NCBI GenBank assembly: GCA_003693705.1
Contig: RBZT01000737.1
Location: 1 to 34,710 of the forward strand
Length of the DNA: 34,710 nt
Reading direction: 5' to 3'
Source of the DNA: Polymyxa betae A26-41
Taxonomy: Eukaryota; Protista; Endomyxa: Phytomyxea
The notes under the pieces are model-generated. The model had not been told where the DNA came from, did not search any database, and was given only the letters and a program-made list of their open reading frames with translations. Positions 1 through 8,353 of this stretch are shown piece after piece (within the stretch, counting starts at the first letter, position 1; every line of letters starts with the position of its first letter). The position numbers were made by a program, and so were the translations under genes.

Positions 1-1326
1 AACGACACCGAACCCAGCCATGGTCGCATCCCTGCCAGCGAGGACAACATCGAGACGGGTTCCAGCCTCGGCGCTGCAGGCGACGCAGCACCCGTCGTAC
101 TGGCCCCGTCCAGCGGGTCGTTTGACGAGCCCGAACGCTATTTGGAGCTTGATCTCATCATTGAGCACGCAGAGCTCGGCTTGAAGCTGTCTTCTATGAT
201 CGCCCAGGTCAGTAAAACAGGCTACGAATATGTCCGGCGCCGGGCTTGCGATGTGTAGCAGCAAGAAATCCGAAGGCGGTCATCGGGCCGCGACCTCATG
301 CAGACATTGCGGGAGATGTTCCCGCATTCGGGCGTCATTTCCGCCGACATCTTCACCGACGAAATTGCCGCTCTGTTCTTGAATCGGCTCCAGACGGCAG
401 CGTGTTATTCACCGGATGCCGTGCTGGATCTGTTCACGAAGAGCGGAATCGGACGGATCCCATCAGTTGGCAGATTAATTCCCGGTTGGGCCGTCTCGAT
501 CCTCGTAACAGCCCATACCGATACACGCTCACTACGAGACGCTCTGGGCAAAATTGTGCAGCTGGTTCCTGAGGAATGCGGCACCATGTCCAGGGCCAGT
601 ATTCCGGAGGATGTTCTCCAACGTAGTCCAATATGATATCTCGAGACAATGCGCAAATCCATCCCGACTATCGTCTGGCGAGAGTAGTCTTCGTTTCCAA
701 GATTATTGCAGCCGAATATATTCGATCACTCCCAGATCTCGACAAAACGTTATTCTTTGTCGGGTTCCCGTTCCATCTGCCGATGGTGAAACTCGGCGAT
801 TTCACGGTCGTCGATCTGCGGGATATTCTGCCGTTCGTGATTGGTGCCGATCAAAGCGCTGAACGAGCACCTTCCAGACCTGATTCAGAGCGGTCGTTTC
901 GACGTGATCGCCTCCGTCATCAACGCGAGAACTTTCGCTTTGCGTCCAGCTGGTGTATCTACAACATCATAATTGAAACTGATCAACATCGAGAGCCAGC
1001 ACGACCTGTTACGTGCTCTGCTGCAGACGTCGTTCGGGGACGGCGTTCTCCAGGAAGCCGCCTCTAACACCTATTTCAGCCCGATTCTGCATTATGCCGT
1101 ACAGGTCGGCAATGAAGCTGCCGTTCGTGATCTTCTGTCAGTTGAGGGACATATTGATTTGAACTTTCTCGATGACCAGTGCCGGACTGCCCGTTCCTAT
1201 GCTGCAGAGGATTCGGAGATCGCGATCTTCTTGGATGGTCTGACCACCGTACTGCCCGTCTCTAATCCGGTCATGGTTCCGAAATCGCGAACTTCTTGGA
1301 TGTCACAGCTATATGTAATATCTTGA
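1..1326 (+). pseudogene. Pseudogene copy of the secreted ankyrin-repeat protein at 5017-6447 (5' end outside the window)
   Basis: Colinear with 5086-6447 (shared TEPSHGR, DIFTDE.AALFL, YSPDAVLDLFTKSGIG, PILH.AVQVGN). In-frame TAG at 256-258 where the paralog has TGG (W). Further stops and frameshifts split it into ORFs 298-636, 633-1067 and 973-1326. Ends YVIS instead of CVIS. Confidence 0.9.
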
Positions 1327-1650
1327 TGAATGTGATGATACTCTATAATTTGGCTCTTTTCTGATAAACCCTCTTTGTTACTAACTGACTTCTGTGCCTG
1401 TGCTGGTTGCTTTGAAACCCTAAAACCTAATTTCCGGGCAATCTTGCGCTTTCAGCCTCCCGTCGTCGCTGTGTAAAAGTATGAAGTAAACCCCGCTGGA
1501 TTCATCTTCCAGTACTGCTCCTGTTGAGAACTTCATTAGATTGCTGCGCCATTCATGCAATCAGACAACAATAATTGAAAGTGTTACGCTGTAGCTTCGA
1601 CAATGGTTTCAGGTCTGGCAGAAATATAGATTTTGCTTCTATATCTTGCA
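1..1650 (+). repeat. Segmental duplication of 5086-6733 (gene plus ~320 bp of 3' flank)
   Basis: 3' flanks align (actctataatttggctcttttctgataaac; tcatcttccagtac; tgtagcttcgac; ggcagaaa.atagattt). Similarity stops at atcttgca (1650 / 6733). Confidence 0.9.
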
Positions 1651-4400
1651 AGTTAGGGTTTAAGGTTTATGGGTTGTTAAATGATACGACACTGTTGATA
1701 TCCTTCAGGAGTGATGTCCGCACTAGGGTAACTGTGCCGCCCTCCCCACCGAAAGGTGCGAACAAATAGTGTAGTCCAATCCAATACAATCCAGCGTTAT
1801 GTTCTCCGCCTGCTTGACAATTCCGATGTTAGTGGCAGATACCACCCTTTTATCGCCCAGAGACGCGCCAATGTAACATAAGGATTCAGATCATTTTTGT
1901 CTTTCAGTAAATCCAGCCGGTTCACCATGTGAAACGACGCGACGCTGTCCATCAGCCAGTCCCTGATCCTTTTCTGACTAACTCTACTTCGAGGTTATTA
2001 TCTTCTCTACTTGGTGTGTTTCTGTCACTGAGAATACCCAGGCGGTGTAGAATTTCATCTAACTAAGTATACCTCGCTGTATGATTTGCTTCGAAACGGA
2101 TATTTCTAGTTTGATGTTTTTTGTTGCAAGATGTTGGGATTTTTTGGTTCAGGTCCTTTTGCCAGTAAAGTGCGCTTTGTGTGCCTGTGTCTGCTGTAGT
2201 ATAGTTTGTAAATCCACTGATTTGTCTATACTGTACTTGCCTACTTCCGATATTCATATTCATCAATGTTTCTGATTTCCGTTAGTAACTCAAGCTGTTT
2301 TCGTTTTTTTTTTCGTTGAGTGAACCCGCGCTCCATTGAAAAATGTTGAGGAAGACATTTCTGTCTTCCGTTGTTGGATCATGTGTGCTCGAGTGGATTT
2401 CCCTATGTGGAGTATAGTCATTGATGTTAGTACCTACTAGGCTGTGTGCTCGCTATATCCCCTTGGGACATTTTGTCAAAATATTCTGTAATATGTCTTT
2501 AGTTGTACTGGGTGCCATGGATTAGTGTTGGAAGACGATATACTTTTGCCTTGCCTTCTTCAATACGAGGATTTTCCCATGCGAGTGCTACGAGTTGGTG
2601 GTAGCGATTACGTCTCTGTGTGATTCCACAGTATCTTTTCTGCTCGAATTCTCCGTTATTTTTGTGCTTTAAGCTTATTATATTCACACAATCTAGGTTT
2701 CGGGTGGCTTTTATTCTTATATGGATTATTAGATTTTTTGGTGAAAACAAGATTCTTTCATTGCTGTTTTGTATTCATTGTAGCTTAAGGGGGCACGAAA
2801 TCCATGTGTGTCTGTCGTTAGAACATGCTGTCGAGTCCGGGAGAGAAGTGATCGGAACTGCTTCTATTGTATTTAAAGGCAGTTAGTAAATTGAAATGTA
2901 AAACAGGAATGTCGAGCTCGGGCAAGATGACGTCGAGGACGAGGTGGCCGCCCTAGGGTTTTGAATCACCGATTGGCTGCTTCCGGAGCTGGAGATGAGA
3001 TTGAGTCATCATTCCGGGAATTATCAGTCGAACCGGAGTTCAGGGTCATGACACATGCCAAGCAGTGTTCAGTCTCGTCTTTCTTAGGGCATTCTTTTGT
3101 ACTATGTGGTGCTGCGCATCGTCCGCATCGGATATTATGGCATTTTGCATCGGAGCAGCTAGCATATTGGCATGTCCTGCATATTCTGGCATTGTGGTTG
3201 TTGAGCAGGGCATCACGATATTTGCGCTTGAATATTGTAACATATCCTTTTCTGATAAGGTATTTGGCTTCATCAGGATAGTTGTAGAATACTTAAATAA
3301 ATCCTGGCGTGCTGATAGATAACTTGGACAGGTTTTGGTCCTGCACAGACTGCAAGCAAACCCTTGGATTTGACAAAGCAATGTGGGACACTGAACCCAG
3401 CTACGTGTCGGTCATCATCAGACTGGACCGTTCGATGTGGTGTGATATTGTTTGACAGGCTTCTTTTGATTGCGGTCTCTTTGAGAATCTTGTATTGCCC
3501 TGTTTATGATTAATTTTGTTTTCACTATATTTTTTGTGTGTGTTACCGGGTTTTAGGTTGGTTGTCGTGATGTCTCCTTTGTCGCTTACATCAATGTTGT
3601 CCATTAGGTCGTTTCCGTTTAAAAGGTTGACAGATTCAGCGTATTTTTCTAATAATTCGACTGGGTGCAAGATGTTACGTACCTTCATTGTCCTGTTCTG
3701 ATTTGATGACGGCTGCACTGTAGTTAAAATCATTGCGATGAATTTTTGGTTGTGGTTTGTAGTTAGCCATATTCTTTAGTCCGCCTTTGTTTTTTGTCGG
3801 TGCAATTTGAGTCTTTTTTGTGGAGGGTTGACTACATCATCAGAGAGGCTTCTTGCGCTTCTCTTGTTGACTGTCGACAACGTTGGTTGCGTCAACGTTT
3901 TCATGATTTCGTCTTCGTTGTTTGCTGTGTTCATTGCTGATTCAAAATGTGTTTGTTCAATTGTTCTTGCTGGAAGGATGTCTTAAGATTGGATATTGCC
4001 GCAAAACCAATTTTTGGTAAGAGTTGGTGTGTTCTATAATGTATACCACTGTTGGAGAGGGTTAGTGGATTCATATGCCAGTGATTGGTCCACGAATCCA
4101 TGTTTTGGATTGCAACACAGTACAGCAAGGTATCGTTCCACTGGGCGACAATGTTGCGCAAGACTACGTGTGGTGGTGTGTTGGCATCAAGAGTAACCTG
4201 GCCGGGAGTCGGGGTTTCGCATCGGATATCAATACAAAATTTTGCGGTCGCAAAACATGTGCGTGAGCGCTGATCAATCACGCAGTTTTCTGAGGAATAA
4301 TTGAGCATCTTGGAAATTTACGAAAATTTATCCAGGGAGTGCGCGGTCTGTTCCGCAGATTCCCTGGCTGTTTCTGCATCTAAGCATCTTCAAACGTCAT
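1651..4400 (-). mobile_element. Degenerate non-LTR (LINE-like) retrotransposon: gag-like ORF1 remnant plus start of an APE endonuclease; no recognisable RT
   Basis: Minus-strand frame reads RICRTCQ...HNIR-CGRCAAPHSTKEC-PKKDETEHCLAC (CX2CX3HX4C at 3089-3127). Downstream, RNVFLNIFQWSAGSL (~2320-2365) resembles the APE N-terminal motif (L.I.QWN..GL). Many stops and frameshifts. Left boundary coincides with the end of the duplication; right boundary is approximate. Confidence 0.7.
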
Positions 4401-5016: not shown

Positions 5017-6447
5017 ATGACAGAGATCATGAATCTTGTTTTTGTGATCACTGCACTTCTGTCCGTGACGGCGTCCGCCACACAGAACGCCACCGAACCC
5101 AGCCATGGTCGCGTCCCTGCCTGCGAAGACAACATCGAGACGGGATCCAGCCTCGGCGCTGCTCTCGAACCAATATTCGCCGCACCGGACGTACCGGCCC
5201 CGTCCAGCAAGTCGCCTGATGAGCCCGAGCGTGATCTCGATTTAAATGTCATCTTTCTGCACGAGCTGTACGGCCTGTGGCCAGCTTCAACGTTCGACCA
5301 GGTCAGCGAGAAGAGCTACGAACAAGTCCGGGCTCGGGCTCGCGATGAGTGGCTGCTCGAGCTCAAAGAACGCAGGTCTTCAGACGGCGACTTCTTGCTG
5401 AGATGTCGGCAGCTGTTCGCGCATCCGACCGCCATTCTCTTCGACATTTTCACCGACGAAGCGGCCGCTCTCTTCTTGAGTCGGATCCAGATGGAAGCGC
5501 TTTATTCACCTGATGCCGTCCTGGATCTGTTCACGAAGAGCGGAATCGGACAGATCCCATCAGTTGGCAGATTAATTCCCGGTTGGATCGCGTCCATCAT
5601 ATTATCTGCAGATGATTATATCGAGGGGCAGAAACTAAGAAAGGGTCTGTTCAAGATTATGGAGCTGGCTCCTGAGGATTGCGGCACAATGTCCACGGCC
5701 AGTATTCCCGATGATATTCTCCAAGTACTTCAGCAATTTACCGACAACAGTGAGGTCGATGAAATTGCAGCTCATCTTCCCGGAGTATTTGCAGAAATCT
5801 ATTTCCATATTCGTGTGTATGCGGCAGCCAGCGCCTCCAAGATTATTGCAACAAAATATATTCGGTCGCGCCCAGACCTCGTCAAAACCCTCTACTTTCT
5901 CGGAGTTCCCTTTGATCTGTCGAAATTGAAACTCGATTTCACGGCCTTCCAGCTGCACAGCTTTCTGCCTTTCGTTACTAAGGCGGACTTTGCCCTGGAT
6001 AAGCAGATTGAAGACCTGATCCAGGCCGAACGTTTCGACGTGATCACCTCCATCATGGAGTGCGACAATTTCAGATGTGGTCACACTGCGTCAATCCACA
6101 GCATCATACTGACTCTGATCAACACCGAGGGCCAGCACGACCTCTTACGCGCTCTGCTGCAGACGCCGTTCTGGGACGGCCTGCTCCACGAAGTCGTCTC
6201 TGTATACTATGGCAGCCCGATTCTGCATCATGCCGTACAGGTCGGTAATGTCGAGGCCGTTCATGAGCTGCTCTCTATTGAGGGAATGATCGATTTGAAC
6301 CTTCTCGATTATGAGAACCTTACTGCCCGTTCTTATGCTGCAAAAGGTTCTGAGATCGCGAACTTATTGGATGCTCTGCCCGTCTCTATGCCGGTCAAGG
6401 GAGATCGCGATGATGTTGGATGTTTTGGGCTGTGTGTAATATCTTGA
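5017..6447 (+). CDS. Secreted-type ankyrin-repeat protein with C-terminal CaaX box (candidate effector), 476 aa, intronless
   Basis: Hydrophobic N-terminus MNLVFVITALLSVTASA. Ankyrin-like GSPILHHAVQVGNVEAVHELLSIEGMIDLNLLDYENLTARSYAA. Ends GCFGLCVIS-stop. The true start may be the Met at 5029. Confidence 0.85.
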   Translation: MTEIMNLVFVITALLSVTASATQNATEPSHGRVPACEDNIETGSSLGAALEPIFAAPDVPAPSSKSPDEPERDLDLNVIFLHELYGLWPASTFDQVSEKSYEQVRARARDEWLLELKERRSSDGDFLLRCRQLFAHPTAILFDIFTDEAAALFLSRIQMEALYSPDAVLDLFTKSGIGQIPSVGRLIPGWIASIILSADDYIEGQKLRKGLFKIMELAPEDCGTMSTASIPDDILQVLQQFTDNSEVDEIAAHLPGVFAEIYFHIRVYAAASASKIIATKYIRSRPDLVKTLYFLGVPFDLSKLKLDFTAFQLHSFLPFVTKADFALDKQIEDLIQAERFDVITSIMECDNFRCGHTASIHSIILTLINTEGQHDLLRALLQTPFWDGLLHEVVSVYYGSPILHHAVQVGNVEAVHELLSIEGMIDLNLLDYENLTARSYAAKGSEIANLLDALPVSMPVKGDRDDVGCFGLCVIS

Positions 6448-8353
6448 TGAGTGTGACAATACTCTATAATTTGGCTCTTTTCTGATAAACTTCTTGTTGC
6501 TAATCTGACTTCTGTACCCGTATATGAAATCCTAAAACGTAAATCCCCAATCCCTTCCGTATTTGTGTAGGTAACAGTATGAAGATGAACTCCTCTAGAC
6601 TCATCTTCCAGTACGGCTCCGGATTGCTGCTCCATTCATTCAGTGAGACGACAGTATTTAAAAACGTTACGATGTAGCTTCGACGTCGATTTCAGGTTTG
6701 GCAGAAAGATAGATTTAACTTCTACATCTTGCATAAAAATATTCGCAAAATACGGTTGATTGTTTGCTAGAAGGCTAATAAGGAGGGAATCAAATGTGTC
6801 GATCAGATCCGGACCAAGATGCAATGGTTATGATCTGTGAGCGATCCCTCGGTTCACGTCGGATCGCTCTTCTGGAATCAATGTAGTTAAGATCTGAGCA
6901 GAAAAAGTGTCTGACCGAAACATCTTCCGATCTCAATGCTGTAATAAAATGCTGAATGGAGATGGGATTAATGTGATGCAGTCGGCATCAGCGAACCCTA
7001 AAACCCTGCGTCCGGATGGTCTTCGGGAGACTGTTTCTGGCTCCATCCCTCATGATTGCTGACAATAAACTCATTCTCTTTAATGCCTCTCATTCTCCTA
7101 TCTGAGACATCATCAATGCTTTCTCCATCAAATCTGTATAGACGCCGGCTTTTAGGCCGGCCTTAGACAGCAGCGTCCTTGACAATACACGATAGCAGCG
7201 ATCCAGTATGACAGCCACTGCATTTGGATTCACCAACTGTTGGGGGAAGAACATTTGATTAGAAAATGTTCCGACTGAAATAGTTTGACAAGTGAGGATT
7301 CTGGGGAATTAATTCCTAAGTTCTTTGAAAATATTTTATTCTGCAAGATAAAGCCGGTGGCTGCGGAATGACGGAGATTATCAGCAAACCGTTTCAGGAT
7401 TGGATGAAAACACCTGAAACAGTTGCAGCTAGAACTTCACCTCTCTGATTGCCATTCTCGGTTCTCGTTAAAAAATGACATTTCTAATCTTTTGTTATAT
7501 GGTATCGAAGAATTAGTCGCTACCTAGATTTCAGATCAGCAAGAGGAAATTCGTCACTATCATCGTCCACCATACTCTGCTGAGCCATTTAGCTTTTAGT
7601 CCCCAGCTGTGGAGTAAACTCGTGATCATGACTACCCGTAGAGCTTAGTAACTGGAATAATTGCAAAGCCAAAGCACAGCGAATACCTCGGAAGCCGGCG
7701 ACGCCAATCTCGTCACAATATCTGTGCAGGTCTCGGCTGATTTCCAGCAGCAGTCTGCTATCTACTGTTTAATAGATATTCAAACGGTTTCACCTTTCAA
7801 TGTCGAATTTCTGACTTCTGCGTTTGATTTTGAAATCTAATGTGAAAGTTGGGCTGATTGCGCGTTCTTTTCTCGTGCAGATGCTGTTGCTCGTCCAGAA
7901 TTGAGTCCGAAACCCAGATTGGAAGCCTGGATGAAAGGGACAATTTCAAAATCAACATTTATTCGCTCAGCCCAGACCACATCCCGGGGAGTCGTTCCTT
8001 CTACAAGCGACATCCAGAATGCATGGCGGGATCCTCAGCGTCCGCTCGGCCAACGTCGACGGAACCAGGAATACTGACATTGGCGTTGGTCGGTCGACGC
8101 CAATCAAGCTGTGCCTAACTGCGAGTGAATTAAACTTCGCCGATCGCGATCCCTTCAGATATCCGGCTGATCATCACTTTTTGCAAAATGAGTCTGCCTG
8201 AAGCAAGCGCTCTACAAGTATGGGAAGTTCAGCGAATCTGTCTCGCGAACGTCTTCGTGTAGAACCTATCACTGTTGATCAGTAGAACGTGAAATGATGT
8301 TCAAGCTGATCATATATTTAAAAATGTTTGCAGAAAATGCATTGCCGATGAGT

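Follow-up and report, generated by a model that had tools for sequence, protein, structure and literature searches.

Effectors of plasmodiophorids are poorly understood, and one of these organisms, Polymyxa betae, is the carrier of the sugar beet rhizomania virus. The plasmodiophorid plasmodium sits within the host cell, so that a secreted protein may meet the host cytosol. In P. betae, the plasmodium develops within the root cell with exchange of cytoplasm (PMC11784302). The secretome of this organism includes five ankyrin-cluster proteins, and its largest cluster was termed 'orphan helical' (PMC12503489).

Host prenylation has so far been described for bacterial effectors, such as AnkB of Legionella pneumophila, an effector that combines an F-box, ankyrin repeats and a CaaX box and is farnesylated by the host (PMC2916131). 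A literature search found no case of a host-prenylated effector from a eukaryotic pathogen. The CaaX tetrapeptide CVIS is S-farnesylated in human ZAP-L (the long isoform of PARP13), in which it drives membrane localization, and its addition to another protein relocalizes that protein (PMC8568172). Recombinant Arabidopsis farnesyltransferase appreciably farnesylated CVI-X reporters with Ser as X (PMC3017772). Here, we analyzed a stretch of 34,710 nucleotides of P. betae A26-41 (GCA_003693705.1, contig RBZT01000737.1; referred to as the window), in which one gene codes for a predicted secreted protein that ends in CVIS.

The 5017–6447 gene and its signal peptide-like N-terminus

The gene is an intact single-exon ORF for a protein of 476 amino acids, located at 5017–6447 on the + strand of the window. 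Its frame is uninterrupted and collinear with those of the paralogs described below: zero internal stops or frameshifts were found across 1428 nt, gaps suggesting introns were absent from the alignment with paralogs, and the nearly invariant residues of the family were all kept (alignment A1). The true start is likely M5, at 5029, and the public gene model for this protein likewise begins there.

The signal peptide-like N-terminus claimed in an earlier note on this DNA was confirmed by reading the sequence. From M5 to A21 (5029–5079, + strand), a hydrophobic core of 13 residues is followed by Ala-Ser-Ala before the putative cleavage site. By inspection, this segment has the classical short n-region, an h-region within 7–15 residues and small residues at positions −3 and −1; the n-region contains no positive charge. 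The layout is common to at least 14 paralogs, including divergent ones (28–61% identity), and the hydrophobic core and the small −3/−1 residues are conserved across divergent paralogs, whereas the linker downstream is not. Cleavage of this segment may be inferred from these features. An N-x-T sequon follows the putative cleavage site (window 5083–5094; A1 columns about 30–45). It is present, as N-A-T or N-D-T, in five of the six closest paralogs in A1, and its conservation would fit entry of the family proteins into the ER.

Occurrence of the family in P. betae and other organisms

A six-frame search of the P. betae assembly (27,085,814 bases in 1001 contigs) revealed at least 95 pieces matching this family, including about 30 long open frames and many others with stops. 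We examined 60 loci and included 19 long members in A1; their identity to the 5017–6447 gene was 28–61%. Even divergent members shared the signal peptide-like segment, the helical body and the motif that closes the last ankyrin helix. Pairwise dN/dS values between this gene and six intact paralogs were 0.64–0.81, which would fit a weakly constrained or diversifying birth-and-death family.

A word-indexed search of protein sequences, with the entire protein as the query, gave no relatives outside this genome. We further searched a profile of the family against 1.84 billion protein representatives and inspected the best 150 matches. Among these listed matches, only P0001, P0002, P0003, P0005 and P0027 matched beyond the ankyrin part; the remaining ones matched the ankyrin part, and P0044 matched best on profile positions 96–132. 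The family appears to be restricted to Polymyxa and its close relatives, as judged from these searches.

Two of these relatives were traced to contigs of other datasets. The P0002 gene (E=1.4e-56 to the family profile) lies at 2210–3028 of L062, a 12.6 kb contig (KI811879.1) of assembly GCA_000510975.1, and is at most 77% identical to the P. betae genome. The same contig has an element of roughly 50 nt (3202–3254) that matches about 20 P. betae contigs with 82–91% identity. KI811879.1 looks like DNA of a related Polymyxa-like organism within another assembly; neighboring accessions are presumably beet and spinach assemblies. P0005, a protein of 343 amino acids with a signal peptide-like start, is encoded at 20–1051 of a 1.2 kb metagenomic contig (L061; JGI metagenome 3300043413, Ga0451711_0079655). 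It matches profile positions 50–360 (E=8e-21), has no DNA match in the P. betae genome, and is probably a homolog encoded by a different plasmodiophorid present in the environmental sample.

Ras-family loci are also present in the P. betae genome. A complete Ras-family domain (E=1.4e-45) was found in an open frame of 268 amino acids (G000:C356:1441-1923, + strand), which is long enough for an N-terminal extension. This frame may belong to the six-member G-domain cluster of the P. betae secretome (PMC12503489).

Domain organization

The protein is predicted to contain, in order, a signal peptide, a disordered linker, a HEAT-like domain, an ankyrin-like solenoid and a disordered tail. The linker (residues 22–97; 5080–5307, + strand) is rich in Pro, Ser and acidic residues and was modeled with low confidence (pLDDT 29–50). 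It is followed by an N-terminal helical-repeat domain of generic HEAT/ARM-like type (residues 98–227; 5308–5697, + strand; pLDDT of the domain model 76.8) and by the ankyrin-like solenoid (residues 228–455; 5698–6381, + strand), which was delineated by profile and fold searches and includes two recognizable ankyrin repeats (residues 398–455; 6208–6381, + strand). An AlphaFold2 model of the full protein, computed with A1 as input, was all-alpha, with a mean pLDDT of 74.3 and a pTM of 0.72; its low-confidence parts were residues 19–95 and 458–476, the latter with pLDDT <50.

The earlier note had also described a C-terminal ankyrin repeat. The single 5017–6447 sequence did not reach the Pfam gathering threshold for ankyrin families: Ank_2 (PF12796) scored 23.7 bits at residues 372–451 (cut-off 27.3) and Ank (PF00023) scored 16.1 bits (cut-off 21.1). 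Weak Ank_2 matches were found in 12 of the 19 family members (best E=3.1e-5), and positions of about 348–432 of the family profile matched many long multi-repeat proteins, with E-values down to 1.6e-24. Given where they match the profile and how many stretches match in each of them, these would be ankyrin proteins. The predicted fold was compared with 48,161 PDB representatives using VIA-align, and the best 50 matches were all ankyrin domains, covering residues of about 228–459. The best of them for the full model was IkB-alpha (Z 8.8, rmsd 4.5, 180 aligned residues); among helical repeats, Z values of about 8 are of medium strength. An ESM Atlas search agreed, all 10 rows listed carrying Ank families, and a Foldseek search with the full model gave nothing significant. 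The ankyrin assignment is supported by the family profile and the predicted fold, but it stays below the Pfam cut-off when the single sequence is considered.

Residues 62–232 were modeled separately as the N-domain (pLDDT 76.8). This model matched generic helical repeats only: the best VIA matches (Z 8.0) were designed and HEAT-type repeats, and the Atlas search detected a HEAT_2 cluster at a TM of 0.51.

An F-box was also sought in the family. At E≤0.1, no Pfam F-box family matched any of the 19 full-length members. The F-box-like family PF12937 matched one of 14 N-terminal pieces (E=0.02), and a weak F-box-like hydrophobic pattern was seen at residues of about 70–107, partly within the linker. 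A PDB search with a profile of the N-terminal region found no F-box protein, its sole match being Arp8 (E about 1), and no F-box or Skp2-type protein was listed in Foldseek, VIA and Atlas searches with the N-domain model. We regard an F-box in the family as not supported by the Pfam, PDB profile and fold searches. Because of this, the analogy with AnkB drawn in the earlier note is weaker than it looks.

Origin of the CVIS terminus

The terminus GCFGL-CVIS-stop, with its second Cys, can be read directly from the DNA, as the earlier note had stated. The CaaX box (C473 to S476) and the TGA stop occupy 6433–6447 on the + strand, with C473 at 6433–6435 and the stop at 6445–6447; C469, four residues before C473, is at 6421–6423. 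CVIS has Cys at position −4, aliphatic residues at a1 and a2 and, as X, a residue that suits farnesyltransferase.

We read about 50 C-termini of the family to the first stop and found a C-a-a-X ending in the 5017–6447 gene only. Most close paralogs end 5–6 residues past the last helix, commonly with Gly-Pro-Ser-Ser-Val-stop. The different ending of this gene can be traced to a partial tandem duplication. Its source copy (6323–6378, + strand) encodes the last ankyrin helix in the normal frame of the family, and segment 6376–6427 is a degenerate tandem copy of it. Direct repeats are seen between 6323–6347 and 6376–6400 (72% identity, spacing 53) and between 6352–6378 and 6401–6427 (78% identity, spacing 49, which amounts to a +1 frame shift). 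As neither spacing can be divided by three, the duplicate is read out of frame and gives a new peptide from L454 onward. The resulting tail of 23 residues (L454 to S476; 6376–6444, + strand; pLDDT about 30–37) consists of the out-of-frame duplicate and the shifted stop region into which it runs.

This stop region is an 18-nt block conserved in the family, which most copies read as Ser-Val-stop: L011 and L041 have the identical block, and L013, L019 and L003 have a nearly identical one. The short-tail copies L011, L041, L013, L019 and L018 read it as TCT GTG TAA (Ser-Val-stop), and in L003 it lies downstream of the stop. Its shifted frame is TGT GTA ATA TCT TGA, that is, Cys-Val-Ile-Ser-stop. 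Since the CaaX box reads a DNA block that is conserved in copies not encoding CaaX, it is a by-product of the frameshift, and the conservation of the block has another cause.

A longer tail is shared by three other copies: a broken paralog in the same window (1–1329, + strand), the intact copy L002, and L016. The shifted frame itself is used by three copies in all, namely the 5017–6447 gene, the broken paralog and L002. The broken paralog is truncated by the contig start, contains in-frame stops and has the same duplicated tail (1182–1237 versus 1247–1302, 75% identity, spacing 65). The Cys codon of the box is TGT in the 5017–6447 gene; at the same position, the broken paralog has TAT (Tyr, 1312–1314) and ends with LYVIS-stop, L002 has TTT (Phe) and a displaced stop, and L016 differs again. 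Retention of the box in intact paralogs, on which the earlier note had made its proposal depend, was not found: none of about 50 other termini had it, including that of L002. In a tree of the last 381 coding nucleotides, the long-tail copies did not form one clade and each paired with a short-tail copy, which points to repeated collapse of the duplicate or to sequence exchange among paralogs.

A 3' intron located after the conserved 'LLD' was considered as a cause of the divergent tails and was ruled out by the homologous stop regions and the tandem duplication.

Past the stop, DNA conservation within the family extends for about 80 nt into the 3' flank (window 6448–6530; L011, L041, L003, L013 and L007). 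The conserved flank contains a GATAAAC-type block and a CTGACTTCTGTG block, and in several copies it is followed by short telomere-like strings of the AACCCTAAAA type. This flank could represent a 3'UTR or a termination element common to the copies, or a mere trace of recent duplication.

Possible roles of the protein and its CaaX box

The reading that we favor, and regard as probable, is that the 5017–6447 protein is an ordinary member of its family whose CaaX box is an accident of frame, neither a conserved nor a selected feature of the family. The intact gene would belong to a large, fast-evolving family of secreted all-helical proteins, which the intracellular parasite most likely releases and whose ankyrin-like surface most likely serves to bind host proteins. 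Normally, members would stop a few residues past the last ankyrin helix. For this gene and a small number of relatives, we propose that the last 50–65 coding bases were partially duplicated in tandem and that the duplicate was inserted out of frame; it and the conserved stop region would then be translated in a new frame that happens to give Cys-Val-Ile-Ser-stop.

We estimated the chance rate of such endings from stop-bounded frames in 248 kb of the P. betae genome. A strict farnesyl-type box terminated 0.06% of random stop-bounded frames, and any C-x-x-x terminated 3%; for one strict box among about 50 family tails, the chance is about 3%. Several strict CaaX endings are expected by chance across the whole proteome. 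Since the frame shift supplies a direct cause of CVIS, selection need not be invoked.

Several points speak against this favored reading, among them the farnesylation of CVIS in ZAP-L (PMC8568172) and by recombinant Arabidopsis farnesyltransferase (PMC3017772), and the position of the plasmodium within the host cell. The strict box is rare among random frames, as given above. Its placement on an accessible tail modeled as disordered, with a second Cys nearby, is the arrangement of real dually lipidated proteins. In addition, the ancestral TGT is retained here and lost in relatives, which could reflect selection in this particular copy. CVIS is chemically competent, and farnesylation could occur if the tail meets host farnesyltransferase.

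The best surviving alternative, which we nevertheless consider unlikely, is that the protein is secreted to the beet cytosol, farnesylated by the host at C473, possibly with additional palmitoylation at C469, and anchored to a host membrane, so that it would represent a new functional targeting device resembling that of AnkB. This would agree with the conserved signal peptide-like N-terminus, with a canonical CVIS on a tail modeled as disordered, with the farnesylation of this tetrapeptide in ZAP-L (PMC8568172) and by the Arabidopsis enzyme in vitro (PMC3017772), with the intracellular life of P. betae (PMC6328671, PMC11784302), and with the six-member G-domain cluster reported in its secretome (PMC12503489). 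Within the parasite, the signal peptide would direct the protein to the ER lumen, so that delivery to the host cytosol would be needed to expose its C-terminus to a cytosolic prenyltransferase. However, the box occurs in one of about 50 family tails and is missing from both the nearest intact tail-sharing paralog and the adjacent dead copy; it was produced by a frameshift across a DNA block that is conserved without coding CaaX; and the AnkB architecture is incomplete, no F-box having been found. Moreover, Cys residues that pass the oxidizing ER may no longer carry free thiols on arrival. We give a low, although not negligible, probability to a real and functional host farnesylation of this protein. 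Slightly less probable still is its stronger form, a newborn lipidation signal, in which the frameshift in the tail would have equipped a secreted protein of the parasite with a functional CaaX box that is farnesylated by the plant in the beet cytosol. If true, and judging from the literature search, this would be the first report of a eukaryotic pathogen with a host-prenylated effector, and the birth of a motif would have been caught in the act. The earlier proposal of an exported, host-prenylated effector holds as far as a secreted-looking, ankyrin-like protein with a competent CVIS on a tail modeled as disordered is concerned, but not as an evolved strategy: a convergent prenylation strategy is not supported by a box that is present in one copy only and was made by a frame-shifting duplication.

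A recent duplicate that is silent or decaying, with the whole tail, CaaX box included, having no biological consequence, is quite improbable. The gene is near a contig end and adjoins a broken paralog, many family copies are broken, and dN/dS is 0.64–0.81, all of which would suit a copy of this kind; against it stand a full-length ORF that is collinear with the family, the nearly invariant residues that it keeps, and 1428 nt free of stops and frameshifts.

Highly improbable is an N-terminal segment that is not a cleaved signal peptide, with a protein that stays in the cytosol of the parasite, or on the cytosolic side of one of its membranes, where the enzyme of the parasite itself would farnesylate it: the uncharged n-region would allow it, but the core and the small −3/−1 residues are conserved in divergent paralogs when the linker is not, a conserved N-x-T sequon lies beyond the putative cleavage site, and all other copies are without CaaX, so that the family as a whole cannot depend on prenylation.

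With the CaaX box regarded as an accident of frame, the analysis defines a large family of predicted secreted, helical and ankyrin-like proteins together with its domain layout, and this family should not be characterized by an accident in one copy. The tail clearly illustrates how a short linear motif can be born when a tandem duplication shifts the reading frame across a conserved stop region. The competence of CVIS in plants makes the gene a specific test case for host lipidation of a secreted protein of a eukaryotic intracellular parasite.

Comparison with known systems

The CVIS tetrapeptide of the Polymyxa protein is the same as that of ZAP-L. However, ZAP-L is unrelated to this protein and is synthesized in the cytosol, and the motif is well conserved in ZAP-L orthologs. 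The likeness to AnkB is more extensive: in both cases an ankyrin region is followed by a C-terminal farnesyl-type CaaX box in a protein exported by an intracellular parasite, and the parasite's own secretory route cannot prenylate the exported protein. The differences are substantial. The Polymyxa protein is without a detectable F-box, and its CaaX box is known from sequence alone, is frameshift-born and is not conserved in the family. In addition, Polymyxa is a eukaryote and would use a signal peptide, whereas AnkB has a type IV secretion signal.

The secreted ankyrin candidates of plasmodiophorids, such as PbANK1 of Plasmodiophora brassicae, provide another comparison (PMC12503489). They likewise combine a signal peptide with an ankyrin-type helical solenoid and belong to an expanded, fast-evolving family in an obligate intracellular plasmodiophorid. 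Unlike them, the Polymyxa family has only about two repeats that are recognizable in sequence, below the Pfam threshold, and a HEAT-like helical domain of its own makes up about half of the protein. Among the proteins of other plasmodiophorids that the searched libraries include, none was found to be related in sequence. The context of an effector family is plausible for these proteins and fits the known plasmodiophorid secretomes (PMC12503489).
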